Of a stretch of DNA of 64,000 nucleotides, positions 7,118 to 45,589 are shown piece after piece; the first letter of the stretch is position 1, and every line of letters begins with the position of its first letter. Source of the stretch: Anthoceros angustus (lineage: Eukaryota > Plantae > Anthocerotophyta). A program made the translations under genes and the position numbers. The notes beneath the pieces are model-generated. The model was not told where the DNA came from. It was given only the letters and a program-made list of their open reading frames with translations, and ran no database searches. The stretch covers positions 893,478 through 957,477 of the forward strand of contig MU008158.1 in the NCBI GenBank assembly GCA_010909165.1, read 5' to 3'.

Positions 7118-7208
7118 CTAGGTTTGACTACTCAGTGCCGCTTTTCTTCTCTCTCATGCAATCGTCGGAACATGGTCAATAGAGTGTTCATCGGGAGATG
7201 CTTTCGCA

Positions 7209-17609: not shown

Positions 17610-18420
17610 TCTTACACTTCCATCGGTATTTAAATGGGGTGCTAGAGGCTTCTTTCCCTCGGTGCTAGAGGGAGTGGAACTTCTTTTTCTTCTACTCAGT
17701 TCATTTTGGTCTACGTTTTATCAAATTGTTTACGATCGTGAAATTCTGTTCGGGGTGTTCCGCTAAAAATGAAAACTGTTTGCAGTCGTCTTATAGTCCC
17801 ACGACCGGGTGTATCGTTGAATGACAGAAGGATCCGGAGACGGCTCGGTGAGAGGAGTAACCAGGCGGGGATGTGAGGTTAGGGGATTGTAACCTAGGCT
17901 GCGACACAGGCACAGGCGCGGCGGTTACGCGAGGTCCCGCCGAGGCAGGTGGCTCGGGCCGGGCCGGAGTCGGAGGTCCTGTGGCCTGCAGACTCTCTCT
18001 CAGGCTTTTCTTTGCCTCGTGGCCCAGCGAGCAAGTGAGCAAGCAACAAGGGTTTGAGCCAAGGGAATGCCCGCAACGCAACTGGATGCGAGCAGGAGAA
18101 GAGGCGAGTGCCGATCGTTGACGGCAAAGTGTGCAAATCGGCGCGCAAATGCGGACTCCCTTGCCTGACTGCCTCGCGTCCGATCGTAGGCGGCTGCCAT
18201 GCTGAATCTTGCGGGCGCAGGGGAAGAGGCGGCCAGGAACGCGCAGGCCGGGGCGGGGGATCCCATGTCTGGCCGCCTGCAGCGCACGCGCCCCTGCCTG
18301 CGGCGGCGACGCGACGCAGCGTGCCGGAGCACGCTGCGGCTGAGAGTGAGTGACGGGGTGGGCCGGCGCCAGCATGATTCATCAGATCGAGGAGTCGGCA
18401 GTTACGGCGGCGTCGGGGCG

Positions 18421-21400: not shown

Positions 21401-24400
21401 TTTGTGTGTGAAATTCTGGACTGCTGTCCATGGTTTGAGTTCTCTGATTTGGAGGTACTGTGACATGTATATCAATGACTTTCTCCCAATTGTTGATGAT
21501 TCCTGATGTCCTGCTGAGACTCTTGTATCGCTGATGTGGTGACATTTTTCTGCAGGTCTTGATGTCGGATGACGAACAAGATGCGTTGTCCACCGATCCA
21601 GATGAGTTGTTGGACTCAGATGACAGTGATGGAATAAGTGGGGATGAGGAAGATTTATTCAGAAGCTTGCTTGCACGAGCTGGTTTTCATTTGAGTTATG
21701 GTGACAACCCACCACTCCTCCTGGATCCCTCGCAGCTGCAAGTTACACTAAGGGAGAAGTTATTAATGGATGCAGGGGCTGTGGGCACCTTTTTGAATGG
21801 TCTTCGAGTCTACTTGGATGACCCTGCTAAAGTGAAAAAGTTGCTTCTTCCCACAAAGACATCCCCTGCGTCTACAGGGAAAGACATGGGGACTAAAGCA
21901 GAGGCAACGTCCCCCAGCTTGATGAACTTGCTTATGGGTGTTAAAGTACTCCAGCAAGCAATTGTGGACCTGCTGTTGGACATCATGGTGGAGTGTTGCC
22001 AACCTTCAGAAGCAAAGAGAACTAGTGATCCTGTGGAGGTCAAGACCCGTGTGATACCTGATATAGGCAATATTCATGGCAAAAATAGCAATGACTGGAG
22101 AGGTGGTAGGGCATCTTTGGACACAAGAGATGCTGGTCTTAATTCAATTGAGCAAAGATTGGAAGTTGGGTTGGATGGAGTGACTGGGGCACAGGCAGTG
22201 CAAAGCAGTGACTCGTCGGCAATTGATGGGCCGGTGGGAAGGACTGCGGCGTTTCCAGTGTCGCTGCTCACGGAATCTCCAACACCAGAGGCATTTGTGT
22301 TAGATACTGTAAACCAGACGCAGAAGGTGGGTGATTTCCTTTGTACCTCTTATGTCCATTGTTTAAGTGCATTTGTCATTGCTGGATTGTTCCAAGCTCA
22401 CTATGTAATTTTGTTGGCAGACGAAATGGCCAGAGCAATCCGATGAGCTTCTAGGTTTGATAGTGAATTCTCTCAGGGCTTTGGATGGGGCAGTGCCTCA
22501 AGGTTGCCCAGAGCCGCGTCGAAGACCCCAATCAGCACAGAAAATATCCTTGGTACTGGAAAAGGCCCCCAGGCATTTGCAAGCAGATTTGATAGCTTTG
22601 GTACCAAAGCTTGTTGACTCTGCAGAGCATTCTCTTGCTGCCAATGCTCTGCTTAATCGCCTGCGAAAACCTGATGCGGAGCCTGCACTTCGTCTTCCAG
22701 TACGTTCAAGTTCTCTGTCTGTTAGTTTGTTCTGTCTGCTTTTTTTTGATTCAGCAGTCCTTGGATTTTGCAAGAACCTGGTGCAGCCCTTAGCTGCTTA
22801 TGGTCGTTTGGCAGGTTCTGGGAGCGTTGAGCCAATTGGAAGTAACCAGCGATGTATGGGAGCAGGTCTTACAGCAGGCTCTTGATATTCTGCCAGAGTC
22901 CAATGATGAGCCCTTGGCTGCAGTCATGAGCTTTGTTTTCAAAGCTGGAGCTGAATGCCAGCAGTTGCCACAGGCGGTATGATGGAACTTGCCATCCTTG
23001 TGTGTTGGGCAATTCTGGAGATTATGTTGTCCTGGACTTGTGAACTTACTAGCTTCTGTTGCTGAACAATGTAGGCAAAGGCAGTCCGGGGAAAGTTAAA
23101 AAGGCTGGGCCCGGCTGTTCCACCGCAAGTCCTTGATGTTGTGCGGAGTACTGTGTGCACACGAATAGATGTTGCCGAGGCACTACTCAGAGACATTGAC
23201 ACCGATTGCGAGTGTAGTGAGAATGAGATGTCGTCACCATCAGCCGGTCTGGATTTTGTAGACCGTGAAGGTGGAGCCGCTGAGCAGCTTCAGGCTGCCG
23301 CTGAGCAGGTTGCAGCAGCATGCTGGCGAGTGGCGGATGTTGACATCATTGTAGAGATGTTAACAGTTTCATCCTTGAGATTAGAGGCACAACGTGTCTT
23401 TGAGCGGGCCATCTCGAGAGGAGCTTTTGGGGAGCAATCTGTTGTGATGGTCTTGGAGAGACGTCGGTCTCAAAGGCTGGATGGGAGATGCAGAGGATCT
23501 GCACAGAGTACTGAGTCTCTGATTCCTAGCACCATGAGCCTTTCATTGCCAGAGGATGAGGATGACTTTCCAGCAGTACTGGGACTTGCCGAATCCTTGG
23601 CTCTTTCTAGGGATACAAGGGTCAGGGAGTTCGTGAGTACATTGTATGCTGTTATGTTCAAGGTATATGGTGATGAAGGGTATCGTGAGCGCATGCTCCG
23701 TGGACTAGTTGAAAGAGCCACAAGCAGTAGCAGTGGTCTTCCTGAGATAGAATTAGGAATGGACATCTTGACATTGATAGTCAGGGAGGAAGAAGGTACT
23801 GCTCGCCCCGCTCTGAGCATGATGCGCGAGGCAGCTGAGGTAGCCAATGCTGACCGTAATGCCTTGTGGCAGCAATTACGTGTCAGTGGGGAGGAAATTA
23901 CCCGCGCTCGGAATGACCGACAGGGTGAGATAACACGCCTCACCAGAGAGAAGGCTGCAATGGCTCAGAGACTTACAGATGCAGAAGGAGCTCAGAATCG
24001 CCTGAAGGTTAGAGAGAATGATGGTCATATGGTTTGGTGAATTGGGAGTTGGCAGTGGTGTAATGGCTGTTCTGACGGTTAGTCATTGGGGTGTGTGCTT
24101 GCAGGCTGAAATGAAAGCAGAGGTGGACAAGTTTGCTCGAGAGAAGAAAGACTTGGCTGAGCGACTTCGCGAGGCTGAGAATCAGTTGGAGTGGGTACGG
24201 TCTGAGCGTGATGAGGAGATTACAAAACTGGTTGGCGAGAAGAAGTCTCTTCAAGACCGCCTTCGAGATGTGGAGTCTCAACTGACACAGCTCAAGTCTC
24301 GCAAGCGAGATGAATTGAAGGTATGAGCAGATGCGACTTGTCAGTGGTCTGGTGTCCTGTGCTATCTGTAGAGGTATAGTGGCTGTGGCACTTCTTCTCC

Positions 24401-26408: not shown

Positions 26409-28785
26409 ATGGCGGCCAATTACGGGCAGATCGGGGGGCTGGGGGAGTCGAGGGGCCGTGGGAGGCGAACAGGATGCATCACGCTGGGTTTGGGGGCCGC
26501 GCTGCTGCTGGTGGTGGCGTGCGTGTTGCTGGCCGTGCTAATCCCGCGGAGCCACCAGGAGGAGGCCAGTAACGTGTTCGTGCCCAAGTCCACCACTGCC
26601 GCCTCGCAGCTGTGCACAGGTAACGGGCAGCAGCAGCAGCAGCAGCAGCAGCACTTGCATTGCATTTGCTTTCCTCTTGGATGGATGGATGGAAGGAAGG
26701 AAGGAAGGAAGGAGGCGCTGATTTGGAGCTGGGTACGTGGTTGTGTGTGATGTGAAGGGACGGTGAACCCGCCATTGTGCGACACGGTGCTGTCCGGCGC
26801 GCCCAATGGATCCGCAGCCACCCCGCTGCAGCTGGTGCAGTTCATCATCACCAACGTGATCCAGGCAGTGGAAGCGTCCCTGGACCTGGTGAACGTGACC
26901 GTGAACAATGCCGGCGCCAACCAGCTCTCCAACGCCACGCTCTTGGCCTTCGGGGACTGCCGCGAGGTAGCTGCCATCGCCATAGCATGCGTGAATTGCA
27001 CCAGCGGTGCTAGCCTAGCCTGTTCCGGATCCACACCATCTCAATTATTCATGCTGCTTGCGTTGGTGCGTGAATTGGCTTGCAGTTGCTGGGAAACTCG
27101 CTGGACTTCCTGGCCACCAGTACGCAGCAGCTGCAGAATCTGACTCTGGCCAGCATCGAAGAGGACGCCCAGAGTGTGATCACCTACCTCAGCGCGGCGG
27201 CCACGCAGTACGACACCTGCCTGCAAGGGTTGGTGGAGGCGGCCAACCCGGTGGGCACGCCCCCGTCGGACGTCTACCCGCCCACCGACCCCTACTCCAC
27301 CAGCAACTCCACTTCCGTGTTGCAGGATCTCTACTCCATCGCGCTCTACTTCGCGGACTACATCAGCAAGCTGGCGGGCACCAACCTCCCGGCCGACATC
27401 CCCAAATCCTTCTCCCTCTCCGACCTCCTGCACAGGCGCCGCCTGCTGGAAGCTGACGAGGAGGAGGAAGAGCAGGTGGATTCTTCGCAGAACGATCAGC
27501 CGGCCTGGTACGAGCTGCCGTCCCAGCTCCAGCTCCAGCTCCAGCTCCAGCAGACGGGGCCATCTGATGCGGACGCGGAGTTCCCCAGCTGGATGAGCCA
27601 CCGCACTCGCCGAGCCCTCCTCCAGCTCGGCACCACCAAGCCCAACAAGGTCGTGTCGCATGGCACCGCCTTCAAGGGCAGCGTCAAGACCATCCAGGCT
27701 GCCGTCGACTCCGCGCCTTCCAAGAGCAGCGACCTGTACGTCATCTTCATCGACAGCGGGATCTACAAGGAGCAGGTCACCATCCCCAAGGAGAAGCAGA
27801 ACATCGCCTTCGTGGGCGCCGGCATCGACAAGACCATCATCTCCTGGGGCGCCAGCGTCGGCGGCGGCTCCACCACCTTCCTCTCCGCCACTCTGGGTAC
27901 GTGCTACTGCTTGTCTTGATGCCGGGCATCGTCACCATAATGCTAAATTCACCAGGCTGACACGACGTCTCTCTCCGATCCCATCCAGCTGTGAACGGGT
28001 TCGGATTCCTGGCGGCGGCTTTGACCATCGCCAACACGGCCGGGGCCAACAAGTTCCAGGCAGTGGCGCTGCGGGTGTCGGCGGACCAGACTGCATTCTA
28101 CAGGATCAAGGTCACCGGATTCCAGGACACGCTGTACGCGCACACGCTGCGCCAGTTCTACCGGGAGAGCACCATCGTGGGCACCGTGGACTTCATCTTC
28201 GGCAACGCCGCCGCGGTCTTCCAGCAGTGCAACATCCTGGCGTCCACGGGCATCCTGGGGCAGCAGAATACGCTCACCGCGCAGGGCAGGACCGACAGCG
28301 GCATGAACACGGGCTTCTCCTTCCAGAGCTGCATCATCGCGCCCACCAAGCAGCTCCAGTCGCAGCAAAAGAACTTCCAGTAAGCACCCTTGGCAACCGG
28401 CAACCGGCAACCGACCGGCAAAATCACCGGCATTCTTTTGTTCCGATCGGTTTCCCCGTCCTCACACCCTGTTTCTTCTCTTCTCTACAGGACGTACTTG
28501 GGCAGGCCGTGGAAGCTGTACTCCAGGACGGTCTACCTTGGCTGCACTCTCACCAACATCGTCAATCCCGCGGGCTGGCTCCCGTGGAACGGAACGTTTG
28601 CTCTCAACACGCTCTTCTACGGGGAGTACCAGAACAAGGGTCCCGGAGCTGCCACTGGCGGCCGGGTAAACTGGACCACCACCGCCATGACAGCCAGGCA
28701 GACCAAGAAGTTCCTCCTCAAGAAGCTCATCCAGGGTTCCGTCTGGCTACCGCCTACCGGCATCCCCTTCTCCAACGGGTTCTAG
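26409..28785 (+). CDS. PME: Type I pectin methylesterase (TM anchor, PMEI pro-domain, PME domain), 5 exons, 638 aa
   Basis: Exons 26409-26619, 26758-26966, 27086-27896, 27989-28379, 28491-28785 (1917 nt). Motifs QAVAL, QDTLY, GTVDFIFG, YLGRPWK; processing motif RRRLL. Confidence 0.93.
26628..26713. repeat. (CAG)8 and (GGAT/GGAA)n microsatellites in PME intron 1
   Basis: Read directly from the sequence. Confidence 0.9.
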
Positions 28786-29866
28786 ACTCTTCAAGGATCC
28801 TTCCACTCGCAAGCACAAGCTGGCCAGCCATGTTCCATGAAGACACGAGGAGTCGTAGGCTGTAGTTTATGTTGATTTCACTTCTTTCAGCCTTCTTTCA
28901 GCCATTCTTTCAGGACACGCTCAAGAACGAGCATGGCCTGCTTTTCTTTTCTTTTTTTAATTTTTGTGACTGCACACATGCAAATTGATGCAAATTGCAG
29001 TGAAATTTGTCTTTTGCCACTAGCCGGAAGCTGTTCATAGCCCCAGAGTCTGAGCTATTGCGGCCTTGTCCTTTTCTTGTCGGATGGCCGGCTCTCTAGA
29101 TGATTTCAGGCCAGGAAGGATTCGTTGGAATCATTGTACGACTGCAAACAAGTTGTAACAATGTAACATTTCCAGACATACCTGAATAGACTTCTTCGCT
29201 GAAGGCCTGGTCTGATAGCAAGCAATTTGTTGTTAAGCATGGATCGGGGATAGAGCATTGCAGGGTTGGTCTCCCTCTCAGCTCCACCCTGAGAGGATCA
29301 GACAGGAGATTTCAGACTTTCACATGTCATGCATCCTTCACTCAGGGGCCCCGTCTCACGCGGACACTTGGCCGACAGCCTGTAGATGCTCAAGGCAAGG
29401 GTGCACGAGTATGAGTCTTGGTGGTAGCTCACGCCTGGCAGATTTGCATTACAGTTTTGCGTCAAGGGCAATAAAGTTAGTCACTCATGAGACACACCAC
29501 GAACAAACCCCAGCTTCACACTTGTAATGCAGCTGGGTAACCTGCAGCGGAGATCAGCCTCTGTGGGCAACACATCTCACAGCAAAAGATCCCTGCTACA
29601 GTCAGATGTCACATGGACTCAATACAGAAGCTGGGAAGGACATGACAGCCAAGAGGCAGGGACCCGACTTTTGCATCGCCCTGTGTAATAATGCTTGACC
29701 TGTTTGCAAAATATCTCCCTCACCATTGACGAGGCAGCTTTGCTATTCCCAAGATGCTCGGAGCGACAACGCACCAGTTGGAACCTTTAGGAAAACTCTT
29801 AAGCTCCTGTGGCGGGGAAGGCATTTTTTATAAAATAAACAATTTTTTCACGTAGATGTGCCATCG

Positions 29867-29937
29867 GCGCAGCTGGTGTAGTGGTATCATAGTACCCTCC
29901 CACGGTACTGACCGGGGTTCGATTCCCCGGCTGCGCA
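29867..29937 (+). tRNA. tRNA-Gly: tRNA-Gly(CCC), copy 1
   Basis: 71 nt; acceptor GCGCAGC/GCTGCGC, anticodon arm GTACC-CTCCCAC-GGTAC, GGTTCGATTCC; upstream TATAAAA, downstream T4. Confidence 0.95.
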
Positions 29938-30174
29938 TGGGTCTACAGTTTTCGTCTAAATATATTATTAGCAAATTTTCTCAGTTTGAGAGCTTCAGAG
30001 TTTATCTGGGAATGGCGTCCTACTACAGGAGGTCGGGACAACAGCAGGTTGGTTCCCCGATTTGCTCATACAGCTGATCAACTTTGGCCATTCTCTGATT
30101 GGATCAACACAGATACCCGAGTTAAGCCTGCAGGAAGTACCTGAACATAAAAGCTTGGGCTGTGCCGCGGAAGC

Positions 30175-30569
30175 CTGGCTACCGCCTACCGGCATCCCCT
30201 TCACCAACGGTTTCTAAAGTCTCCAAGAATCCTTCCACTCGCAAGCACAATCTGGCCCCATCTTCAATGCACGGAGGAGCAGTCGGGTGTAGTTCATATT
30301 GGTTTCACGTTTCTCTCGCTCAAGAGCAAGCGTGGCCTACTTTTCATTTAAATTATAACTGCACACATGCAAATGGCAGTGAAATCTGTCCTTTGCCTTT
30401 CTTTGGCAGGAAGCTGAAGCTAACCAAAGTCTGAGCTATTGCGGCCATGTCCTTTCCTTGTCGAGATGGCCGGCTCTCTCCTGATAGCTTTAGGCCAGGA
30501 AGGATCAGTTATGACTTCAAACAATTTGCAACAATGTAAAATTTCGACACATGCCTGGTTAGACTTCTT
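30175..30569 (+). pseudogene. Duplicated 3' end (last codons plus 3'UTR) of the PME gene
   Basis: ctggctaccgcctaccggcatccccttc (WLPPTGIPFTNGF*) and downstream UTR align with 28743-29196. Confidence 0.9.
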
Positions 30570-30679
30570 GAAAGACACAGGCTGAATGAAGGCTTCACAC
30601 AGGATTGAATAAATTGCCCACGAAGAGTATCAACACTCAACATTGGAAGAGATAGCAACACATTCAAGTGGAAACAATC

Positions 30680-31246
30680 TGCTGTGGGTCAGGCTTTCTG
30701 GTCATCAAGTTGGATGATCAACGCCACAGAAATTCGACTAGTCCAATATAGAACACAATTTAACTCTGACAGGTATAGGTTGCTGTTGTACCACAAGGTC
30801 CACAACCCATCATAGATTCAGGAGGAAAAGAGCACGAAGGTGCACATGCGCAATTCAAAAGGAAATTCACACAGCGGTATCGGGGCCGCAGGTGGTGTCA
30901 CGTTTTTAGGCTAAATGCGTGTTCTCTATACTCAAGACTTGTCAGGTTCCATTCGTGACTGTTGTAGGGAACTTGGAGCAAATTCGCACCTGTACATACC
31001 CGTAGGAGGAAGAGCAGAGGCACGACATTTACATGAATGTAACCGCTTGAAGACAATGGTGTGAGCAAGCAAAATCGTTGCTCACACCATTGTCTTCAAG
31101 CGGTTGCATTCATCAGCATTCATCAGCAAGGAAACGAAAACCGATCTGAATCCTTCCGGATTCAGATCCATTTCGCAAACTGCTGTAGCTAGATGCTTGA
31201 ACTTCAAGCTCAGCCTATCTCAAGTGTCCAATTTGAGCTGCTCACG
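30680..31246 (+). pseudogene. Relic of a tandem P450 paralog: promoter/5'UTR and intron 1 remnant (continues at 37890-37943)
   Basis: tgctgtgggtcaggcttt identical at 30680 and 37944. 31002-31071 aligns with 38402-38471. 31176-31243 aligns with P450 intron 1 (39473-39533). 37890-37943 aligns with 39534-39588 (acceptor plus DIYATSVES vs ETYAGSVES). Confidence 0.8.
31033..31113 (+). ncRNA. 36-bp hairpin with 9-nt loop, candidate MIRNA/hpRNA precursor
   Basis: Arms 31033-31068 and 31078-31113 pair fully with one G:U. Transcription is not shown. Confidence 0.55.
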
Positions 31247-31394
31247 CGCTACCTGGAAACCATGCCCTTTATCATGGACTTATAATGGATTTTACTATGG
31301 AGTTACTACTCTAGTAATAAAATATCCGTAGTAAAGACAAAGCATTAATTTCCGTGGTAATGTCTCATACCTAAAGTTTACTTTACTACATAAA

Positions 31395-32340
31395 TCAACT
31401 ATACTTTTTTATTACATATATAAAAGCCTCAACAGCCTCAGCATCCTTTGCAATTTTGCGGGGCAGATAATCCCTCATCATCCACCCATCATCAGTAACA
31501 TTTTGCTTCATGATGGCTTCCATGATCTTCCCGTCGCATTCATCAGTAAGATATCCTGCCTCCTTCAATATGTCCCACACCACAATAGCCTTCTCCTTCT
31601 CCCCATTTGCACCAGCCTGCGGACCCAACTCTGGCTGTCCGGTTTTGAACTCCCTCCAAAACACTCTCAACTTCGAAAGCCAAGACCCATGATTACTTCC
31701 TACAGCCTTTATCTCATCCAGGCTTGGTTCACTAGTGTACTTTTCTCTAAACCTCTCTAGAAACCCATTCTGACCACCATAACCAAAGCAAGAATATGTA
31801 TTGCTTCCTACCTCCTTCATCCTACTCATGGCAGCTAGTTTTTGCTGGCTAAGGGCCACGACTCTGCTTATCTTGTTTTGCTCCTGCTTCAAAAACACAT
31901 CCCAATACTCTTGCTTCACACCTTTCGGGACATACTGGGGGTTAGACTTTTTTCCCTGCAAAAAATAACGGGCCTCTTTTCTAACATTGTTCCTCCAATG
32001 CTTCAAATTAGTGCTAAAAAACTGCAAGACAATAGGCTGAAACTTCCATGGCCCAGTCATAGTTTGCTTGATATATGTTTCAACATGAAGCTGGATGGCG
32101 TCTGCTTCAAAAACACATCCCAATACTCTTGCTTCACACCTTCGGGACATCGGGGTTAGACTTTTTCCACCAAAAATAACGGGCCTCTTTTCTAACATTG
32201 TTCCTCCAATGCTTCAAATTAGTGCTAAAAAACTGCAAGACAATAGGCTGAAACTTCCATGGCCCAGTCATAGTTTGCTTGATATATGTTTCAACATGAA
32301 GCTGGATGGCGTCTGTCTGTTTCCAAAAGGGATATATGAG
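31395..32340 (-). pseudogene. Ptta/En/Spm (TnpA-like) ORF disrupted by a ~218-bp tandem duplication
   Basis: NLKHWRNNVRKEARYF...VPKGVKQEYWDVFLK...SCFGYGGQNGF resembles the recalled Ptta/En/Spm profile. Duplicated segments 31884-32101 and 32102-32315. Confidence 0.55.
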
Positions 32341-32783
32341 TGGATTGCATATGTACCGGACCGCAAAATGGACTCTGTCCTTCATCGGTATGAATGAGGG
32401 ACTCTCTTGGTATATAAACCCTAAAAAACACGAGGAGTTGCAGCAAGGTTAGTACTATGGCACCAGCAAAGTTGGAGTTTAATTAGGCCTAATTCAGTCT
32501 TCAAACAGACTTAGCAAAAAGTCTGTTTGACTTTCTGCTAAGTGACAAAGTGAATAGGCTTGTTGCATGCCCTGTTATCATCGCTGTTCCAAGCCTGATA
32601 AGCCATGCCTGAAATGGGGTTGAAATTTCATGCCTAGACCCAGGCCACCATCCCGCTCTTACAGTAAATAACATTACATGAACTACAAATTAGCGTGCTT
32701 ACCAAAAGGGTGCAGATGTGAGGGAAGCACTTCTTGACAGATATCGTGAACGCTCTTCCGCTTTGGGCCCCTCTTGCCCTTCA

Positions 32784-32919
32784 CCTCCACATCGCGGCAT
32801 TCAAGTAGAAGGGTGTTCGCATCGTCCTCCACATCACGACATTCAGCTGGAAGGGTGTCCCCATCTTCCTCCACATTGCGGCATTTAGGTGGAAGGGTGT
32901 CTGCATCTTCCTCCACATC
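32784..32919. repeat. 42-bp tandem repeat x3.2 (14-aa acidic/Cys repeat on the minus strand)
   Basis: cctccacat at 32784, 32826, 32868, 32910; translates as EEDADTLPPKCRNV/EEDGDTLPAECRDV/EDDANTLLLECRDV. Confidence 0.9.
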
Positions 32920-33724
32920 TTCATCATGAGGAAGATGCTAAAACTCTGCCCCCCCAAGTAAGCCACTTGCATCCGTGGCAACACAATCTTCAATGTCAAG
33001 GCAGACAGGAAATTCAGCATTCACCCTGTTAGCATGGGCAGGCTCTACAGATGCTTCTTTAGCAGAAGGGTTCTCATTTTTTGTAGTCTTCGTGCATGGC
33101 GCACGAAATTTGCCCACACAGTTGGTTTTTTCTGACTGTCTGGTACACGGCAATATGCACCATGTACTTCCTTCTCAAACTTTGGGTGAGCATAAGTCTC
33201 CAGCCCCCTATCATGATCCACCAAGGCATCATGATTACCGGCGAGGGTAACCACCATTTTTGCATTGTTCGAAACCAGTTGTGTTGCTTGTGATTCTAAC
33301 GCGCTAGACCCTTCTGCGCGTGAAGTCAGACATCGTCCATAACGCCCTGGAGCATAGATCCGGCTTGACTGCCTCAATTTGCCGTGCCCTTCCTCGTCGA
33401 TATCTAAATCAGACTCGGCCTCTTTCCCCTCAGAACGCGGACGCTCCTCGTCCACGGCATCCTCATCGGAAACCCTGTCCGCATACCATGACTCCTGCTG
33501 CACATCATCATCAAACCCCGAGCAAGCGGCGGCACCCTTTGCCCTAGCGGTGGCAACACGGGCTTTGGGCCGCCCCGATTCCGGAACAGGTGTGCACCCA
33601 CGGCCACGCTTGCTCGTGCCAACGTGGCTATTGCATGCTCTTCCATGGCCATCACAACCAAGCCCTGCCATTAAGGACACCCGCTGGGATGCATCCCTTT
33701 TTTTCCCACTGCCCCGTTCTCGCT

Positions 33725-36187
33725 CACGAGTAACCCCAGGCCTCCTTGAAGCCCGGTTCTTTGCTAGCTCTACATCCTCGCTATTCCCGATGGACACTGA
33801 CATCTCCCATGATTCTTTAACCTTCGCCATGTGCCCTTCAATCTCCCGGGGGTGGGTCCGAGGAAGTTGGCAGCCACTTCTAGGTTCTTGTCAAGCGCAA
33901 CCAACTTTGGGTCCAGGCCAATCATCCCCTCCACAGTTGCCTCCACAGCAGCATCTCCAGCAACCATTGCCACTGTCGTCATGCGCCAAGTGTCCTTGTT
34001 CGCCTCTGCCCGCAACTCGATCTTCTGCGATTTTGGCATTTGGACCCATGGTTGGTTGTGATTAACAAGAGCAATGGAAAGAATGGCATGCCCACACTTG
34101 AAGCTTGAAGTGGCTCACAAAGCGCATCTGCTGTAAAACTTGCATCCTTACCCTAAATCCCACAGACTCCCAAAGAGGGCTGATGTGGCTTCAATCCGTC
34201 CCGCTTGCTTGCGCCAAGTGCCCTCGCTATAACCCACAATGGTAAGTTCTCCTGTTCTCTCTAGCCTTCGTGGTACATTGATCGACTGAGTAGACCCCGC
34301 CCAAATGCGATTCTCTGCTTTGTCCGGGTATTTTGGTTTTTATGAACGTCACAGCAGTCGATTCGAGCGTCCCTACCTCCATCGCTTTCCCACCTTTTGA
34401 ATGCCGTTTTCTTGTATTTAAACATTATTAAATGGTTTTTTGTCCTTGAACCATGGGAAAAGGGCAGCAGAGTCCCGCCTCGCTTTCAATCCAAGCCAAG
34501 GAACCCTACGGTTGCTTGTCCTCGGCCTTGGTAATCCAAGAATTCTGCCTATACTATCTTACCATGGTAAAATACGATATATTTCATGGAAACCCCGCAA
34601 CCCAAGGAAGGTAATCCGGCTTATAAGGCATTGAAGGAAACACTTTTTAATGGAGCCATTGTCCGTGTCTGTGTGAAGCCTTGACCACAATCTGGTGTAT
34701 TTGACCACTCGAGTTCTTTTAGAAGCACGCGCCTGTGCAAATTCCACGTCCCGGCATGCCGTTCCTCTGTAGCATTGAAACGCCTGTCTGACTGAAGATA
34801 CGTGGCGATGAGCCGTTGGCTTGTCCAAGCCATAAGAAGGGGCCACCGCCACCCCTTGGCATGGTTGGGTGTAGGTTACACTAAAGCGCAAGATTACAGT
34901 TGGCGTCTGCGATTCAAGATTGGGCGCAATTGTGAGCATGTCCAAATTTCCTCGCCACGAGTAACCCCAGGCCTCCTTGAAGCCCGGTTCTTTGCTAGCT
35001 CTACATCCTCGCTGTTCCCGATGGACACAGACATCTCCCATGATTCTTTAACCTTCGCCATGTGCCCTTCAATCTCCCGGGGGTGGGTCCGAGGAAGTTG
35101 GCAGCCACTTCTAGGTTCTTGTCAAGCGCAACCAACTTTGGGTCCAGGCCAATCATCCCTCCAGTTGCCTCCAGAAAGATCTCCAAGAACCATTGCCACG
35201 CCATGCGCCAAGTGTCCTTGTTCGCCTCACCGCAACTCGATCTTCGCGATTTTGGCATTTGGACCCATGGTTGGTTGTGATTAATAAGAGCAATGGAAAG
35301 AATGGCATGCCCACACTTGAAGCTTGAAGTGGCTCACAAAGCGATTCGCTAAAACTTGCATCCTTACCCTAAATCCCACAGACTCCCAAAGAGGGCTGAT
35401 GTGGCTTCAATCCGTCGTCCCGCCGTTTGCGCTGCCAAGTGCCCTCGCTATAACCCACAATGGTAAGTTCTCCTGTTCTCTCTAGCCTTCGTGGTACATT
35501 GATCGACTGAGTAGACCCCGCCCAAATGCGATTCTCTGCTTTGTCCGGGTATTTTGGGTTTTTATGAACTGCAGCAGTCGCCTGGCCCCTACCTCCATCG
35601 CTTTCCCACCTTTTGAATGCCGTTTTCTTGTATTTAAACATTATTAAATGGTTTTTTGTCCTTGAACCATGGGAAAAGGGCAGCAGTAGTCCCGGCCTCG
35701 CCGTTTTCAATCCCGAAAGCCAAGGAACCCTACCAGTGCTTGTCCTCGGGCCTTGGTAATCCAAGAATTCTGCCTATACTATCTTACCATGGTAAAATAC
35801 GATATATTTCATGGAAACCCCGCAACCCAAGGAAGGTAATCCGGCTTATAAGGCATTGAAGGAAACACTTTTTAATGGAGCCATTGTCCGTGTCTGTGTG
35901 AAGCCTTGACCACAATCTGGTGTATTTGACCACTGAGTTCTTTTAGAAGCACGCTACTGCGGTAAATTCCACGCCCCAAGATGCCGCTCAGTAGCATTGA
36001 AACGCCTGTCTGACTGAAGATACGTGGCGATGAGCCGTTGGCTTGTCCAAGCCATAAGAAGGGGCCACCGCCACCCCTTGGCATGGTTGGGTGTAGGTTA
36101 CACTAAAGCGCAAGATTACAGTTGGCGTCTGCGATTCCGAAGATTGGAGCGCCGAATTACAGTGAGCATGTCCAAATTTCCCTGTCC
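33725..36187. repeat. ~1.23-kb tandem duplication inside the CACTA element
   Basis: cacgagtaaccccaggcctcc starts at 33725 and 34956; copies are collinear and differ mainly by 1-3 bp indels. Confidence 0.95.
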
Positions 36188-36310
36188 ACGCCAATTTTTC
36201 CTTGTTGTTTGTGGTTGGCATGGACGCACCCTCGTGCGTATCATGTGCACTAGGGCGTGCTTTGAGACGTGCACTGAAGGGCGACCATATGCAAGGGTGA
36301 GGACTTGCCA

Positions 36311-36411
36311 CGGCCATGAGCCGCGGCATATGCTTGTGCCTCGGCCATGAGCCACGACATATGCTTGTGCCTCGGCCATGAGCCACGGCACATGCTTGTG
36401 CCTCGGCCATG
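36311..36411. repeat. 31-bp minisatellite x3.2
   Basis: cggccatgagccRcgRcaYatgcttgtgcct at 36311, 36342, 36373, partial at 36404. Confidence 0.95.
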
Positions 36412-37479
36412 TCCTCACCCATGGCCGCGCCTTAGCGTCGCCCATGTATGCAGCCCAATCGCGACTCCCCAAGAACCTAATCACCATTAGTCCTGACACA
36501 TGAATGGTTTTCCAGGGAATTTTGTGATTGTGATTAACAAGCATCGATGGCCGCAGCACCTGAAGCATGATCTCCCGGAGATGGGTGGCCGGAATATGCT
36601 GCTCAGTGGGAGGCCACCATCTGCGCCACCTTTGATCACGCATGGGCAATTCGGGGTCAACTAACCCCACGCGATACCATCGTGACCGCAGAGGATGCCC
36701 ATAGAATTGTTGAGGGTGTCCCTGATGCGGAGTTTCTAGAGTTCTGCACGCGGTTCATTGTAGTGGGCCAAAGCCTTTCGGAGGTAGATTCAATGCTCGA
36801 ATGATGCCTGTGTCGTGGACGCCCGGGATACTCACATGGGTGGACGAGCGGCGACATACCATGAGGCTTCTATGGGATGCCATAAAGGTGCGTTTTGGCC
36901 CAAACCCCCATTAGTGTGAACATATTTAGGGTATGCAATTTAGGGTTTGTGGCAACCCCTAAAAATTCGCAAAAAGGGCCATGCTGTCATGCTTTTGATA
37001 ACTTAGTAAAAGACGGCCCATTGTAAGTATCATATACGCCCATAGTGATCCCATACCTAAAATGTGTAATGTAAAAAGTAGATCCGTTGTAAATCCAGGT
37101 AGTAGAAAAAGAAAAGTGGTGGATAGTAAATAAGAGCCTTAAAAGGAAAACGCCCATTGTAAAACATATTTGTAGTAGAAAAACTTATCCCTGTGTAAAT
37201 CTCCATGTAGTAATTTCCATACTTGAGTAGTAAAGTCCTCCATCTTGTTGTGAACCTCAATTGCCTTTGTAATAAACGACTTTCGCCACTGCCCCGTCAT
37301 CGTATTGAGTCACTGAGAAATCCCACCACAGTAAAATACTACAACCCTTGTTGAAAAATCTATTGGTATACTCCTAGAAAATAATTCGGCCAATAAACAC
37401 CCATAGTAAAACAAAAATGTGCTCCACTCTCTCATCTCTCTATAAAACAGAGTTTAGTAAAGGGCATGGTTTCTTAGTA

Positions 37480-37884
37480 CCGTACCCCGCGGACTGATTC
37501 GGTATTAATTAATTAATTAAAATTATTAAAAGTTGAAAATCGAGAAATTATTATACTTAAAATGTTGAATATGTAAAAATTTATGAGTTTAAGATGCAGA
37601 AAACAAGGAAACTAGGGTTTGTGTGGAAAAGTAGGGACCTGTTTAGGGGAGGTCTATACATATCCATTACCAAGTCCCATGATGGAAATCCGTCCTTAGT
37701 GGACTTCAATAAAATTCTTCTTCTTCTTCTTCTTCATTAGTTATATATATACCTATGTATTTTAATAAAATTATTTTTTGAAAATATTTAAATTTTGAAA
37801 ATATTAATATTTATGTTGAACCTTATTTTATTTTAAAAATAATTATTTCGGCATTATCCTGTTGAACCACCCCTCGGGGTACGG
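37480..37884. mobile_element. 405-bp MITE (Tc1/mariner/pogo-like) nested in the CACTA right TIR
   Basis: Perfect 10-bp TIR ccgtaccccg/cggggtacgg, AT-rich interior, flanks TA and GA (read as a TA TSD with one substitution). Confidence 0.7.
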
Positions 37885-38470
37885 GAGTGAGGATTGTGGG
37901 TGAATGGCACTTGCAGGACATCTACGCTACTTCGGTGGAGTCATGCTGTGGGTCAGGCTTTGCGCAAGGCAGTATAAAAATTCCACAAGCCGAATATAAA
38001 AACACCAAGGAATCTGTGAGGTATCTGAGATGGTTCGGGGTTCGAGCCAAACGAGCGCCACAGTGAGCAGGCGCTTTTATTTGCTGATGAGGTTTAGGCG
38101 ACAGGATAGATACTAGATGCGGCCAGACGTCGAACCCAGTGACCAGAAACGCATGAAAGAGACACGGACAAAAACAGACCAGGAAGGTGTAATTGATGCT
38201 GCAATGCACAAACTGAGGTGTGGTGGCCGCAGATGGCGTCACGCTTTTGTCAAGTATCGGCCCATCCGGGCGGCAAAGGTTTCACGCTTTTATTCGGTTT
38301 ATGTCGTACTCTACACCCAGGAGATGTCAGGAGCCATTCACAGCTGGTACCTCTGAAGCGAGTGCACTGTGGACACAAATGCACAGCAGCTAGCAGCGGC
38401 TGTAGGAGGTGGAGCAGGAGCAAGATAGACACATGCATGTAGGTGCTTGAAGCCAGTGGTGTGAGCGAGC

Positions 38471-40330
38471 ATGGGCGCAGAGGCAGAGCTACGGGGAGAT
38501 TATGCTCAGGCGCTGGCTCTGCTTGTGACGGCAGCCTTGGTATGGTTGCTGTCCGTGGTGCTGTACAGATCAAGGCGACAGACGGGACGGAATGCCGGGT
38601 TGAAGCTGCCTCCGGGGCCCCCCAATCTGCCAGTCATCGGATCAATGCACCTCCTTTCCGAGCCCCTGTGTTTGGCTTTCCAGGATCTCTCCCGGAAGTA
38701 TGGCCCGCTGATGTACATGAGGTTAGGCTACACTGACTGCGTGGTGGTGTCAGATGCCGACACAGCCAAGGCGTTCACCACCACACACGACGTGCAATTC
38801 GCGTCCAGGCCATACTCCACCCTGGGCGAGGTCGTCGGCTTCAACTTCAACGACGTGGTGATGGCACCGTACACCCCCCGCCTGAAGCGCCTGCGGAAGC
38901 TCATGGCCACGGAGCTCATGTCCGCGGAAAGAATCGCTAGCTTCGACCCCATCATAGCGGAAGAGACTGCTGCGTGCGTCACCAGGATGTGGGACTCGAA
39001 TGCGGAACCGGTGGCATTCCGGCGGGAATTGAAGACTCTCATGTCCAACGCCATCTGCCAGATCCTGTTCGGGACGCGGTATGCGGCGGACAGCGCGTTG
39101 GGGAAGAGCTTGGAGGCGTTCGCGGACGCCGTGGAAAGCGTGGGCAGGACCGGCGGGAAGTTGGACCCCGGCCAATTCTTCCCTGCCATTCGGTGGATGG
39201 ATTTGAGGGGAGTGAAGCGTTCCTTAACCAAGGACATGCTTGTGGCTGAGGGCTCCCTCCAGGCTGTGCTTGATGACAGACGGGCTGTTATTGCTGCCGA
39301 TGCCGATGCCGATGCCGATGCCGATGCCGATGCGGACATGGACGTACTGGAAGCCTCCCGCAGGAAACGCTGCACCATGGCTGACATTTTGTTGTTGCAG
39401 AACCAGGCGGGGCAACTCTCGGATATCGAGCTCATAGCTGTGGTTTTCGTTAAGTTTCCTTCCGAACCCGAACAAACTGATGTGGCTGAATGTTGAATAC
39501 ATAGACTGTTGTAGTGTTTGATTCGAGTCGCTCAGGATTGTGGGTGAAAGGCACTTGCAGGAAACATACGCTGGTTCGGTCGAGTCTTCGGCTATAACCG
39601 TGGAGTGGGGGATCGCGGAGCTCCTCAACAACCCGCACATGCTCAAGCGAGCCCGCCAAGAATTAGACCGTGCGGTGGGGAAACACCGTCGTGTTGAGAA
39701 GAGCGACATGTCCAATCTCCCATTCCTACAGGCAAGACTGACCATGAACATGAACTACATTCCCGCTTCACACTGCCTCCATTTTCATCTCTTTCTTGCG
39801 AGTTGCCAGCCGAGTTCACCGTCTGATTCGTGCCCTGGCCGCAGGCAGCGGTGAGGGAGACGCTGCGCTTGCACCCAGCCTTGCCTCTGGGCATCCCGCA
39901 CTCCAATGAAGAGGCCGCGGAGGTGAATGGCTATCACATCCCAGCCAAGAGCAGCGTCTTCTTCAACCTGCACGCCATAAACAGGGACTCCAGGAAATGG
40001 GACCTACCGGACCAGTTCCAGCCCGACCGCTTTCTCAACTCCAACATCAACGTGATGGGAGCACACCACCAGGTGCTCCCATTTGGGGCGGGAAGAAGGA
40101 TGTGCCCTGGGGCGTCCTTGGGATTAGGCACGGCTGTGAGAGCTTTGGCCAGCGTCATCCACGCGCTGGACTTTCAGCTGGTTGGAGAAGATGGCAACAT
40201 TCAAGCTGCTGGAACGCAGGCCCAAGGGGCTATTGACATGAGCGTTGCAACGGGGGTGGTAGGGTACATGAAGCAGCCAGTGCGTGCGGTGCCACTACCC
40301 AGGCTTCCCTGCAATGTGTACCGCAGCTGA
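38471..40330 (+). CDS. Cytochrome P450, CYP71 clan, 3 exons, 544 aa
   Basis: Exons 38471-39448, 39561-39731, 39845-40330 (1635 nt). N-terminal TM, LPPGP hinge, ETLR, PDRF, heme motif PFGAGRRMCPG. Second intron is GC-AG. Confidence 0.93.
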
Positions 40331-40421
40331 CATCTACGCCAACCGGCCACGTAGCATCAAGCTTACGGAGTTACGATCAGGAACGGATGTCGATCGAGAA
40401 GATGACCTTGGAAGCTAGCCA

Positions 40422-41010
40422 GCTTAGCTCTTCGCTTTCACCTTGGCAAAACGCAGCTCAGCAGCTGTATGGTGTGCATCTCTTCCTCTCACAGTTAATG
40501 ATCAGCTGTTTCTCATGCTGGAGAGCATCTGAGTGCCGCTGTTTCTCGCCATGCTTGTTTCTGGACATCGGTGCGACTGTTTCTGGGGGTCCTTCTCCTG
40601 GTTCATTGATAATGTCAAGTCCAGGCGCTTAGCTCTTAGCTTTGACCTTGGCAAAAAGCAGCTCAGCAGCTGTATGGTGTGCATCTCTTCCTCTCACAGT
40701 TAATGATCAGCTGTTTCTCATGTTGGAGAGCATATGAGTGCCGCTGTTTCTGGCCATGCTTGTTTCTGGACCTGGAGAGCATCTGAGTGCGACTGTTTCT
40801 GAGAGTCCTTCTCCTTGTTCATTGATAATGTCAAGCCCGGGTACGTTTCTTAGAGCATTCAAGCCATACACGTGTGAGGGCAAGCAACTCCTCAGCCAAA
40901 TGTGGAACAAGGACGAGGTGGATTTGGTTGCTGGCATCAGCCTATTAGACATGTTTATGAAGTGTGGCAGCGCCGACGATCCTCAAGTATTCCCAGTCGG
41001 ATGTGCGAGG
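40422..41010 (+). pseudogene. PPR relic with a ~205-bp tandem duplication
   Basis: Duplicate units 40422-40626 and 40627-40842, followed by TFLRAFKPYTCEGKQLLSQ...DLVAGISLLDMFMKCGSADD. Confidence 0.6.
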
Positions 41011-42012
41011 TCCCATCTTCTATTCACACAAGTCATTTTTCTGTAGGCGGAAACCGACCAATCTGAGTTTTCCATATGTTCAAAGCTCAGTGTCGGTAAC
41101 CTCCGTGTCAGCGCGAACAAGGTTTGCATAGACCCCCACGTGGTGCTCCACAACATTAGGGCATGGATGGCATCGACATCGGCGCGCCTCCAAGCCTCGT
41201 AAGCCTACGTTTTTTCGTCTGTGTAGCGGGATGTAGATCTAGACCATGTTTGCTTACAGTTTCCGCTTGCAAGATCTAATTGCGAGCAAAGCAGCAGCGG
41301 CCAAAGGCCAGGGTGTAATAAGACCGCTACGATGGTCAGCTTCTGGGCAGTCATCGTGCTAACGCTGGTTCTGGCTCTGTTCATAGCCGTTTCCCTCTTG
41401 GCTCCGGGCGTTATCCGTCAGTCATCGTCCCTACCCTTCCTCTTTGTTTCCTTCCTAGCATGGTAGAAAGCTCGTAGGAGAATGCGTCACGACGGTTTGT
41501 TTGAATTCTAGCTATTTTTGTTTCTGTGTGATGACAGGTTTCAACAAATCCGCTGCTGCGGAAGGCACTGTCAAAGCTCTCAATACACTTCCTGTAACTG
41601 CTTGAGAACTTAGAAGCACTGAATTCCTCCTTGTCTAGTACAAGGTACAGGGGCAGACGGCTTCCCAAGTTTCAGTCTTGAGAGCAAGTCACATGTTAGC
41701 GTTGGGATTAAGGTGTTTCCTTCGCTCTGTCGATTTTGCCAAGTAGTTTACTGGCAGCTTTTCGAGTTATGTCTCTTTCCTCAGAACCTGCAGGTAGACC
41801 GATGATCAATGGTATGTAGGTCGATTATTTTCTCAGCCTCCTGATAAAGGGCATCCATGTTACGATAACCCTACACAGGAGCTGCTGTTAGACACCCAAG
41901 GGGCTGCTGTTATACACCCACAGCGAAATCGGAATCATGAATGGCGAGGATGAAAGGAGAATCCATGTTAGGATAAGCCAACACAGCGCGCCTGAGGTGA
42001 GTTCCTGTATCG

Positions 42013-42075
42013 GGGCACCCACCTCGTGTATCAGGAGGCCTGGGAGGGCACCAACCTCGTGTATCAGGAGGCCTG
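42013..42075. repeat. 30-bp direct repeat, period 33
   Basis: gggcaccMacctcgtgtatcaggaggcctg at 42013 and 42046. Confidence 0.85.
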
Positions 42076-42625
42076 TCCCAGAAAAACTGTGACGCTCCTG
42101 AGAACCTGTTTTTGGAGTGATTTGCTTTACTCAATTATATATAACAAGGTACAACAAAGAACTACTCCGAATACTCAAAAACGTCTTCAGAGTCTGGCAG
42201 TTTGAATTGAGTCGAGAAAGGTGGTCTTCGCAGAGACCACCATACCACGTAACTACCGAATTGAAGTTTCTAAGGTGTCAAGGATTGCCTGACGTTCCAG
42301 CAATTCGTGGAGAAGCACGTCGAGATCCTGTGGAATTTCAGACAGTGCTTCGTGGATGGGTCTTGAAAGCGGCAAAGTGAGCCCAGGAAAGAACGCAGCG
42401 TCCAGTCGGTCCATTTCCCCTGTTTAGATTTTAGATGGCTTTGGAGAACATAGTTGTGAGGGGGAAGTCAATGGAGAGGGGATCCTGTTCAAAGGAAGCG
42501 CCAACCGGTTGCTGCGGCTGGTGTCTAGGTCTGACCGGTCCTGAACCTGTTGAAGAATTTGATGGAAGAGGGATTCGAGCTTAAAATTAGCCTTATAAAA
42601 AACAAAACACATGTTCCCCAGCCCA

Positions 42626-42696
42626 GCGCAGCTGGTGTAGTGGTATCATAGTACCCTCCCACGGTACTGACCGGGGTTCGATTCCCCGGCTGCGCA
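42626..42696 (+). tRNA. tRNA-Gly: tRNA-Gly(CCC), copy 2
   Basis: Identical to 29867-29937; upstream TATAAAA present. Confidence 0.95.
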
Positions 42697-45589
42697 CCTG
42701 CTAGGTATACAATTATTTATGTGCCAGCATTTAATTTTCACGCAAGGCTTGCCTTCTTTCTAACTTCTCCAGCCTGAATGTCAAAGCCCTCTTTCTAACT
42801 TCTCCAGCCTGGACGTCCCTCTTTCTTACTTCGATATTTGAGTGCAGGGAAGTCCCTCTTTCTATTTCTCCAACCCGGAGACTTGATTTTCCTCTTTTAA
42901 AATGACAAGTATCCCCATGATATTTGGGTGGAGAGATTCTCGACGGACAAGCATCTTCAATTTAATTCTCCAACCTGAACTAAGATAGACAAGGATCCTC
43001 AATTTAATTCTCCAGCACAAACTAAGATAGACAAGCATCCTCAACAAAGATAGATGACATTTGAGCACAAATCTCGCACGCATACATAGGATTTGACCAA
43101 GTTGTGGATTCCTTCTTTGCTTCATACTATCCAAAGTGCACTCTCACCAGCTGTCTACAGGATTCAACCAAGTTGTTAGTTTGAAAGGAACGGCTATCAA
43201 AAAACCAATGAACCCAGTGGTTTCCATTATAGAATGCTATTTAACGCGTTCCGTGTTCCCGTTATCCACATTGCACCGCATTTGCTGTACTATCTATGTT
43301 GTTTCCTAATATCATGCGTTTCCTTATACCCTAATATCGCGATTATTACATACCCTAATACCCTAAATATTAAATACCCTGAGCTCAAATTATCCTAATT
43401 ATTTATTTATGTCCATTGCAAAGTTCCTTCTTTGCTTCATACATTGCGGGCTCCTTCTTTGGCTCATACTATATATCCAAGCTTTTATAGATTCAACCTT
43501 ATCATAGGTTGCTTCATATTATTCAATCCGTTTATGTCTGGCATACCCTTCTTTTCTCTGTAGTAGTCTGTGCATTGAAGGTTTAATGTCCCTGAGGTAA
43601 CAAAACATTTGAACTCCTTTATTACATCTGAATCCTCTATTATACTTATCATATCATATAGCTAGGAAACATAATACTATTGAAGTTTCTGAACAAACAT
43701 TATCAATCATAGTAGTTTTCATGTTGTCGGCTCCTAGTTATCAACAACCTCAAAGGGTTGCCTTTGCTTACAAAGATATTGATTTAGCCTGCACAGTCAC
43801 AGCATCCCGTATCATGTCACACCGTCCCGTATTCTACGAGCCCATGCATCTACAATCATTATCCGGCATTCTCTATTTAAGCAGTGTCATACCGTGTGAC
43901 ACTAATCTGAGCGCTTGGGTTTAGTGTTTGATTAGTGTTAATTAATCTAGTTACTTATCTTTAAGTAAGTAATTAGTATTAATGAACATATGCACTTATA
44001 TTAATTAGTATGGATTAGTGTTAATTAAACATTGTTAGCAAGAGCTAAGTGGATAAGCACAAGTAATATGCTTTAGGAATTCCTTGCATATTATAGTATA
44101 TTCTTAGGATATTTTCGGCATATGCTTATGTCAATAGGATATCTTAGGAATATCCCGATACCGAGGACTAGAATATATAGATCCTTTCATACAGGACAAG
44201 CTCATATCATAGCTTTTCTTCTAGATATACAATGTAAGAGTGTTGTGAGGAGGCCAAAGCTATGACTCCGAGAGCGATGTGTGAGGAATTTGCGTATTGT
44301 TCTCGTGGAAAAAGTGTGTTTGTGCCACGACGTGTGAGCTACTCTCTCCTCAATTGGTCTGCACCTGTATTTGCATATTAGATTTGTTTTGCTTGGTTGT
44401 CTCTTGAGGAAGTGCTCAAATGAATGCAAGTGCTTACCTTGTACGACAGCAATGACGAGATGGTGCTACGGCGGTGCACGTTGGGTAGGGGATCTAGGTC
44501 TTGTGGCAAGGGCAGTCGCCTTCCAAGCATGGTCTCCCAATCTTCCCCTTCCAACCAATTTCTAATTAGGCAACACTTCAAAGGTTGCCTTAGAAAACCC
44601 TAGCCCTACACACATGCATGCTATAGTTAGGCGTACCACAGTCAGGCTTGTTGCAATTGCGCCTTTGGTGGGATAAGCCGCAGTTGGCAAGCTCAACGAT
44701 AAATTATACATGTGATGCAACATATGCATTGTTGGTGAATTTTTGCAATCAACTTGATAAAAACCACTACATATATGTATAAAATGCCCACGTCCATGAC
44801 CACAAATGCCAATACCATTTTTTGACGAGTGAGGAGGTCGAGAAAATATGTTGACCCATAGCAATAACGTGTTATCCACTTTAAATTTGTCTGGCTCAAA
44901 GCCGTGTTTTCCACTTTGTCTAGCTCAAATCCGGGTTGTCCACTTTGTCTACCATCTTCATGCCTGGCGCAAATATTATTGCTTGTCAATTTGTCTCTCT
45001 TTGTAAGTACGTCGTGTTTGAGGCATTGTAACTAGTGGGCCTAGTTTTGGGCTTCGGTTTTTACGCAATATCGTGGAGTGAAGTGTGAACTTGGTCCTGG
45101 GTCCTATCTATTTGCATGAGGTATGAATTGAGAGTTCGAATGCACTAGCTACCGGATTGGAGTAGTGCTCACACCTTTGGAAGGAAGGGCACACAAATCG
45201 CCCGCTGAATCTGAAATTGCACAGAATAGCTGCATTGCCAGCATATTGGTGAACATGTAAGTGGTGGCTTGATTACGCTTCCAGGAGGTCTAATAAGAAG
45301 GTTAGATTTAAGACTCCACTGTCGCATTCTTAACAAGGACATCTGAAAAGTCATGTAACATAATATCGGCTAAGGCGGGATCATGAACAAAGTTTATTTA
45401 GTATGATAAGACAAATTCATCTTTTTGATAATGCAAAGAAAAGCATGAGTGTCGGGACGACAATAGTCCCAAGCCACCTAAGCAATAAATACTTGCTGAA
45501 TTGGCGACACAAAGATCATATATTTGGCCCTTAGTATATATATATATAAGCTTAGTTCATGATAATCCCCAGCCTAGGCATCTATGATA

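Follow-up and report, generated by a model that had tools for sequence, protein, structure and literature searches.

A short hairpin antisense to a P450 leader in Anthoceros angustus, probably a repair scar in a partial tandem duplicate of the gene

How should one read a short, nearly perfect hairpin that lies upstream of an intact gene and is complementary to that gene's leader: as a microRNA (miRNA) gene at its birth, or as a by-product of the way in which the locus was assembled during evolution? The question is raised by a hairpin and a cytochrome P450 gene in a 64,000-nucleotide stretch of the genome of Anthoceros angustus (GenBank assembly GCA_010909165.1, contig MU008158.1, positions 893,478 to 957,477 of the forward strand), which we call the window and in whose numbering all positions are given. 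An initial annotation had described the hairpin as a candidate miRNA or hairpin-RNA (hpRNA) locus, born from a dead P450 paralog and complementary to the leader of the live gene. We find that the hairpin lies at the deletion junction of an old partial duplicate of the P450 gene, and we propose that it is probably the scar of a DNA break repaired in this dead partial tandem duplicate, silent or nearly so. We stress that one and the same hairpin can be both a repair scar and a nascent small-RNA locus.

The 36-bp inverted repeat reported in the initial annotation is present at 31033-31068 and 31078-31113. Its arms are 36 nt each, 97% complementary and separated by a 9 nt spacer, and among the short-loop inverted repeats of the 64-kb window it is the strongest. 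As plus-strand RNA the stem is uninterrupted, with one G:U pair and no bulge, and its predicted folding energy is -64.3 kcal/mol, against -21.9 +/- 3.1 kcal/mol for 200 dinucleotide shuffles (z = -13.6); on the minus strand the G:U pair becomes an A.C mismatch and the energy is -62.4 kcal/mol. The stem stays the same when 301 nt are folded together, with an extra small hairpin just 3' of it. The arm sequence occurs three times in the window, as the two arms and in the P450 leader, and no shuffle gives such matches.

Two public sequencing runs were compared with the locus as contigs, in which 21-mers cannot be represented: X1, a DNA run, and X2, a small RNA-like run whose type is guessed. Of the words sampled from 30600-31600, 58% occur in run X1. 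One of its contigs, 908 nt long and with a word depth of about 18-fold, covers 30198-31109 with no difference inside the hairpin, and thus reaches through the 5' arm and the loop as far as the 32nd nt of the 3' arm; the depth is near that of single-copy sequence (26 in the hairpin bin, about 18 beside it). Because reads of this run cross the inversion point, an assembly artefact is very unlikely as its source. Palindromes are classic artefacts of assembly and of long-read chimeras, and run X1 may derive from the assembly's own sample, so that its independence is uncertain; fold z-scores of about -13, and arm matches that shuffling does not reproduce, nevertheless leave the whole idea that the inversion is an artefact, or the similarity a product of chance, hardly credible.

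The origin of the arms can be read from the sequence around them. As had been claimed, the 5' arm is homologous to the sequence just before the P450 start codon: the arms are identical to the leader at 28-29 of 36 positions, and the homology goes on beyond the 5' arm for another 150 bp or so in the upstream direction. The local alignment of 30879-31071 with 38264-38471 has a score of 61, compared with 20.6 +/- 2.4 (maximum 30) in 300 shuffles, and an identity of 75% without gaps. The same 18-mer opens both copies (30680-30697 and 37944-37961), and 30884-30907, a 24-mer, is 87.5% identical to 38225-38248. The promoter and leader homology, put at about 390 bp in the initial annotation, is therefore real when measured against shuffles, but it is patchier than described, since the middle of the region, roughly 180-260 bp, does not align. 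At its downstream end the homology still includes the A of the start codon (31071, corresponding to 38471); the ATG is not retained in the upstream copy, which we term X', the corresponding region of the live gene being X.

The other end of this copy is found several kilobases away, immediately before the live gene. Here a relic, Y', consists of 30 nt from the very end of intron 1 and the first 23 nt of exon 2, as judged from the gene model and from comparison of the window with itself, and it ends 1 nt before 37944, where the X'/X similarity begins. Such abutment is what a tandem duplication with the end points -527 and exon 2 +23 should produce, the duplicated segment spanning 527 bp upstream of the ATG to the 23rd base of exon 2. 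Consistent with this, the downstream copy starts at the duplication junction, and the upstream copy starts at the equivalent base beside unrelated sequence. From these observations, we infer that Y' and X' are the two ends of one old partial tandem duplicate of the 5' half of the P450 gene. As the duplication ended 23 nt into exon 2, the upstream copy never had the C-terminal half or the haem-binding exons. About 1.06 kb, comprising exon 1 and most of intron 1, has been lost from it; tblastn and sensitive blastn found no remnant of exon 1 or of the bulk of intron 1 in 31114-37889, and Y' is the sole relic. The dead paralog of the initial annotation has indeed lost exon 1 and the ATG, and can now be described more exactly as the upstream half of a partial tandem duplication.

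The arms record a second event, the age of which can be compared with that of the first. They differ from each other at 1 of 36 positions, whereas each differs from the live P450 leader at 7-8 of 36, all seven differences of the 5' arm being common to the 3' arm, and the X' and X copies differ at 19-25% of positions. Were the arms as old as the duplication, the probability of at most one difference between them would be 0.004 at the rate of 7/36, or 0.0004 at the 25% divergence of the flanks. Given this disparity between arms and copies, the inversion is much younger than the duplication and occurred long after it, unless selection, or conversion of one arm by the other, has maintained the pairing of the stem. 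The single arm difference keeps the pairing on the plus strand, as a G:U, though one site carries no statistical weight.

The position of the inversion and the composition of the sequence next to it point to its mode of origin. The inversion centre lies 2 nt beyond the last homologous base, and the 3' arm repeats, in reverse complement, the final 36 nt of retained homology, next to the deletion junction, as a snap-back of the broken strand would leave it. In the end of this arm and the 133 nt that follow there are features expected of reiterated priming and slippage: a 10-mer in 2.3 copies (GCATTCATCA), arm-derived words of 7-8 nt, and palindromes. One of these palindromes, at 31138-31173, has an 11-bp perfect core; a mini-palindrome at 31195-31209 is built of the arm words GCTTGAA and CTTCAAGC, and a further arm word, TGCTCAC, stands at 31239-31245. 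In total 30 of the 133 nt of filler fall in words of at least 7 nt common to the hairpin source, a value reached by 18 of 1000 shuffles and by 3 of 468 genomic controls. Repair scars of DNA polymerase theta contain reverse-complement snap-back inserts taken from the adjacent flank, together with signs of reiterated priming and slippage (PMC5068794), and two further papers describe templated inserts in the scars of this polymerase and of synthesis-dependent microhomology-mediated end joining (SD-MMEJ) (PMC2943611, PMC4912351). The locus resembles these insertions in that the insert is the reverse complement of sequence flanking a deletion breakpoint and is accompanied by a slipped direct repeat and short flank-derived pieces, which suggest repeated priming and dissociation. 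It is because an inverted copy of the flank is found at a deletion breakpoint together with a slipped 10-mer, palindromes and arm words that we read the hairpin as a scar of break repair.

On this basis the history of the locus (features in Table 1) may be reconstructed in four steps. The first two can be followed in the sequence: a tandem duplication from -527 to exon 2 +23 put a copy with the ends X' and Y' directly before the live gene, and the upstream copy later lost the interval that begins at about the start codon and stops shortly before intron 1 ends. We hypothesize that the break was then closed by synthesis-dependent, template-switching end joining, in which the broken 3' end folded back on itself and was extended by a reverse-complement copy of about 36 nt of the leader, giving the hairpin; slippage would then have produced the tandem 10-mer, and more short templated or palindromic filler would have been added. 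The remaining step, which may fall at any point in this order, would be the arrival of the transposon-like element of about 6.2 kb that is seen 133 bp further on. The outcome would be a near-perfect stem of the size of a miRNA precursor (pre-miRNA), the 3' arm of which is antisense to the leader of the live P450, and hence possible raw material for a small-RNA gene.

Table 1. Positions of the P450 gene, its partial upstream copy, the hairpin and associated features in the window
Feature	Position	Strand	Remarks
Upstream copy of P450 promoter and leader (X')	30680-31071	+	reaches the position of the A of the ATG
5' arm of hairpin	31033-31068	+	sense relative to the P450 leader; 7/36 positions differ from the leader
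Hairpin loop, 9 nt	31069-31077	+	contains the end of P450 homology (31071) and the inversion centre
3' arm of hairpin	31078-31113	+	runs antisense to the P450 leader; repeats the 5' arm in inverted form, one position (a G:U) differing
Candidate 21-nt small RNA of the initial annotation, 5' U	31079-31099	+	pairs with 38447-38467
Perfect tandem repeat of GCATTCATCA, 10 nt, 2.3 copies	31106-31128	+	begins within the end of the 3' arm
Filler between hairpin and insertion, 133 bp	31114-31246	+	palindromes and arm-derived words
Transposon-like insertion, roughly 6.2 kb	31247-37482		terminal inverted repeats; boundaries approximate
Relic of intron 1/exon 2 junction (Y')	37890-37942	+	87% identical to 39534-39586
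Upstream region and leader of the live P450 (X)	37944-38470	+	homologous to X'
Site complementary to the candidate small RNA	38447-38467	+	4-24 nt upstream of the ATG
Intact three-exon P450 gene, CYP71-clan type	38471-40330	+	gene model; PF00067 relatives

Several observations weigh against this reconstruction. Published templated inserts have a mean length of about 10 bp, with snap-back as a minor class (PMC5068794); an inverted copy of 36 nt, several times longer, stands at the long end. The priming site is not clean, a 1-nt bulge having to be assumed at 31069, and the enrichment of arm words in the filler is moderate (p about 0.01-0.02). Near-identical arms are equally expected from selection for pairing or from gene conversion of the palindrome. 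About 190 bp of proximal promoter and leader can still be recognised in the upstream copy, from which transcription through the hairpin is plausible. The examination of the hairpin at the RNA level is very weak, consisting of one small run of guessed type, seen as contigs only. The case also differs from the polymerase theta and SD-MMEJ insertions in that the event is ancient and is inferred from one allele, and in that the partner end of the deletion is masked by the later transposon-like insertion. Taking both sides together, we consider that the hairpin is most likely silent, or yields no more than a few small RNAs that are not under selection. Run X2 gives no contig on 28988-34500, which includes the hairpin, though it gives one on 28600-28987, the 3' end of a neighbouring pectinesterase gene; as the run is small and its type guessed, this is a weak negative.

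Could the hairpin nevertheless work as a miRNA gene? Community annotation criteria for plant MIRNA genes are reportedly those of Axtell and Meyers (2018). A miRNA duplex should have few mismatches and neither large bulges nor secondary stems, and the hairpin offers a 36-bp stem with one G:U pair and a 9-nt loop; long-stem hpRNA loci, by contrast, typically have stems of hundreds of base pairs, from which many phased or heterogeneous siRNAs are made. The MIRNA criteria also include a primary transcript across the hairpin and, in replicate libraries, reads that show the precise excision of a single 20-22-nt duplex with 2-nt 3' overhangs. The initial annotation had picked out a 21-mer from the 3' arm (Table 1), and its pairing with the P450 leader is as described there: one mismatch at position 15, G:U pairs at positions 1 and 12, and positions 10-11 paired, which gives a score of 2.5. 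Scores of 3.5 or better are confined to the loop-proximal registers 31077-31082, and no other target site for the candidate 21-mer was found in the window. The 3' arm is antisense to the last 40 bases of the leader of the live P450, and its target site very probably lies within the P450 mRNA. The lower stem, which had been given as 16 bp, does measure 16 nt on the 5' arm but 14 nt on the 3' arm. These 14/16 nt below the duplex, with unpaired flanks, agree with the 15-17 nt of double-stranded RNA beside the duplex that is a determinant of processing by DCL1 (PMC11317159). In structural terms it is thus possible that the hairpin could give small RNAs directed against the P450 leader.

If it were a newborn working MIRNA, the promoter copy would drive a transcript in which DCL1 would measure about 15 bp from the base of the stem and free a 21-nt duplex; the strand with the 5' U (31079-31099) would enter AGO1 and cut or repress the P450 mRNA in its leader, and the silencer would be co-expressed with its target. 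The stem fits one such duplex on a lower stem of 14-16 nt with single-stranded flanks, segments of 15-17 nt are known determinants, and closing the mismatches of the duplex raises the processing of two-step precursors (PMC11317159). The target score with its paired central positions, the confinement of good pairing to the loop-proximal registers, arms that are still paired, and about 190 bp of retained proximal promoter and leader homology also fit such a gene. Against these stand the missing contig of the small run X2 on the hairpin and the fact that complementarity to the P450 leader is automatic, given the paralogy of arm and leader. Young foldbacks with perfect pairing should, moreover, serve as substrates for several Dicers and yield mixed products (PMC11317159). 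The four candidate mature and star sequences, including the candidate itself, appear in none of the literature searched, supplementary tables lying outside the search. In an Rfam 15 scan of 29000-43000 the hairpin remained below the gathering score of every family and matched animal miRNA models only, the best being mir-4782 with 44.5 bits against a threshold of 100. Such sub-threshold matches to animal models reflect a generic likeness among hairpins, and we rejected them as evidence of family membership. On balance we regard a working MIRNA as quite unlikely.

A model in which plant MIRNA genes are born by inverted duplication of their target gene is said to have been put forward by Allen et al. 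in 2004. This mode of origin is summarised in PMC11317159, and genome-wide support for it is given in PMC1790633 and PMC3237417. The locus shares with such genes that both arms are homologous to the would-be target, with a likeness that extends past the putative mature RNA, as expected of a proto-MIRNA, that the stem is nearly perfect, as for a very young locus, and that the parent gene family adjoins it. Unlike them, it is formed from a piece of about 36-40 nt that comes from an untranslated leader and not from coding sequence; it is already one pre-miRNA long, and has not been whittled from a long inverted gene fragment; and it stands behind a copy of the target's own promoter and is known from sequence alone. 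One might accordingly imagine an "instant" MIRNA, in which a one-step snap-back at the start codon of a truncated duplicate, equipped with the promoter of the target itself, is active wherever the P450 is transcribed and feeds back on the target's leader; we think this distinctly improbable. The locus is of a known kind, combining a target-derived foldback with a templated repair insertion, and what is unusual in it is the length of exactly one pre-miRNA behind a copy of the target promoter.

A different fate for a transcribed hairpin is suggested by the element that begins 133 bp from it. This insertion has imperfect terminal inverted repeats of 25 nt with a 16-nt perfect core, subterminal repeats of the TAGTAAA type and internal tandem duplications. 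A clean target-site duplication was looked for and not found, so that the ends of the insertion remain approximate. An open reading frame (ORF) of 267 aa within it (31398-32198, minus strand) reads towards the hairpin, and a weak lead from the protein atlas (0.86-0.88) connects it to Transposase_24 of the En/Spm type and to DUF8039. A Pfam search of the ORFs of the intervening 6.8 kb gave no match above the curated cut-off and one below it (DUF2316, E 0.0012). Over 31461-32310 run X1 gives contigs that are diverged and present in multiple copies. Between the insertion and Y', to which it extends, lies an AT-rich stretch (37473-37891) with an inverted repeat of its own.

Read-out from this insertion is one way in which the hairpin might be transcribed, from either strand, and diced to heterogeneous small interfering RNAs (siRNAs) of 21-24 nt; these may target the P450 leader, or guide DNA methylation to the sequence immediately before the ATG. 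The fold is as good on one strand as on the other, and the insertion lies close by with its 267-aa ORF pointing to the hairpin. Linked proto-miRNA-like hairpins at the self-incompatibility locus of Brassicaceae silence a neighbouring gene by non-canonical routes (PMC13128112). These dominance modifiers are like the Anthoceros case in that a proto-miRNA-like hairpin precursor is linked to the gene acted on, and differ from it in that silencing of the target is there reported from experiment. Since a stem of 36 bp is far below that of typical hairpin-siRNA loci, and the small RNA-like run X2 has no contig here, we regard a heterogeneous siRNA source as unlikely. We also considered whether the hairpin might itself be a transposon or a miniature inverted-repeat transposable element (MITE), and rejected this origin: a MITE would belong to a multicopy family, with terminal inverted repeats set between target-site duplications, whereas the hairpin is near single-copy and its arm is homologous to a gene leader and not to the neighbouring element.

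New in the present analysis are the far end Y' of the upstream copy, the relative age of the inversion, the repair-type pattern at the breakpoint and the insertion at 31247-37482. Should expression and processing of the hairpin be shown, the locus would capture the birth of a miRNA very cleanly, with the parent gene, its dead copy, the point of inversion and the target site within 8 kb of each other, and it would suggest a shortcut in which a 36-nt snap-back at a repair junction replaces the long inverted duplications of the classical model. If the "instant" MIRNA were true, new plant miRNA genes would arise directly from break-repair scars, here in a deep-branching land-plant lineage. If the hairpin is silent, which we judge likelier, it is a well-resolved natural case of a partial tandem duplication followed by a deletion with templated inverted filler. 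It also carries a caution: when a hairpin lies beside a paralog of its supposed target, complementarity to that target alone is no evidence of regulation.

The live P450 gene has exons at 38471-39448, 39564-39731 and 39845-40330 in our gene model, a first intron with GT-AG borders and a second with GC-AG borders, and encodes the haem motif FGAGRRMCPG. Its database relatives are all of PF00067 and are listed at 25-39% identity, with the top hits at about 30%; no P450 more than 39% identical to it was found in the protein database. Most of the relatives are seed-plant enzymes of the CYP71 clan, Riccia and Adiantum being represented too, and the protein atlas agrees. Directly 3' of the stop codon, at 40422-40841, there is a tandem duplication of about 205-215 bp with 89% identity.

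The insertion upstream of the gene carries a 1.23-kb tandem duplication (33719-36181, 93% identical) and shorter tandem arrays at 31884-32315, 32784-32919 and 36306-36411. Over most of 32540-34500 there are no run X1 contigs at a likeness of at least 90%; part of this sequence may be absent from the sample or different in it, or may have been filtered out.

The entire interval from 28.7 to 38.5 kb is made up of a patchwork of segmental duplicates. The pectinesterase gene at its upstream border (27991-28785) matches PF01095 in two in-frame pieces, the intervening stop probably lying in a short intron, and the end of the run X2 contig at 28987 suggests the end of its transcript. Its 3' end and downstream sequence (28743-29196) are duplicated, with 71% identity, at 30175-30569, just upstream of X'. 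Identical tRNA-Gly(CCC) genes at 29867-29937 and 42626-42696 flank the P450 region, their own flanks being unrelated; the tRNA-Gly bin in run X1 has about 7 times the single-copy depth and therefore belongs to a multicopy tRNA family.

Farther from the P450 gene, an intronless ORF for an RsgA-type GTPase (53583-55046) is followed by an ORF of 659 aa (55104-57080), on the minus strand, that matches no Pfam family. The closest match of the GTPase is a Logan protein, 72% identical, and annotated plants reach 57% at most (moss and liverwort about 50%), so that the lineage is poorly represented in protein databases. The two ORFs also stand side by side, at 1856-5470, on a 16-kb Logan contig of this relative (L001). 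That contig holds no P450 gene, and it begins 1.9 kb upstream of the RsgA gene. Elsewhere in the window there are a tRNA-Thr(CGT) gene at 7046-7118, a 498-aa ORF with three MATH domains at 18199-19692 and, at 21559-24037, two ORFs with weak FancD2-like matches that are probably exons of one gene.

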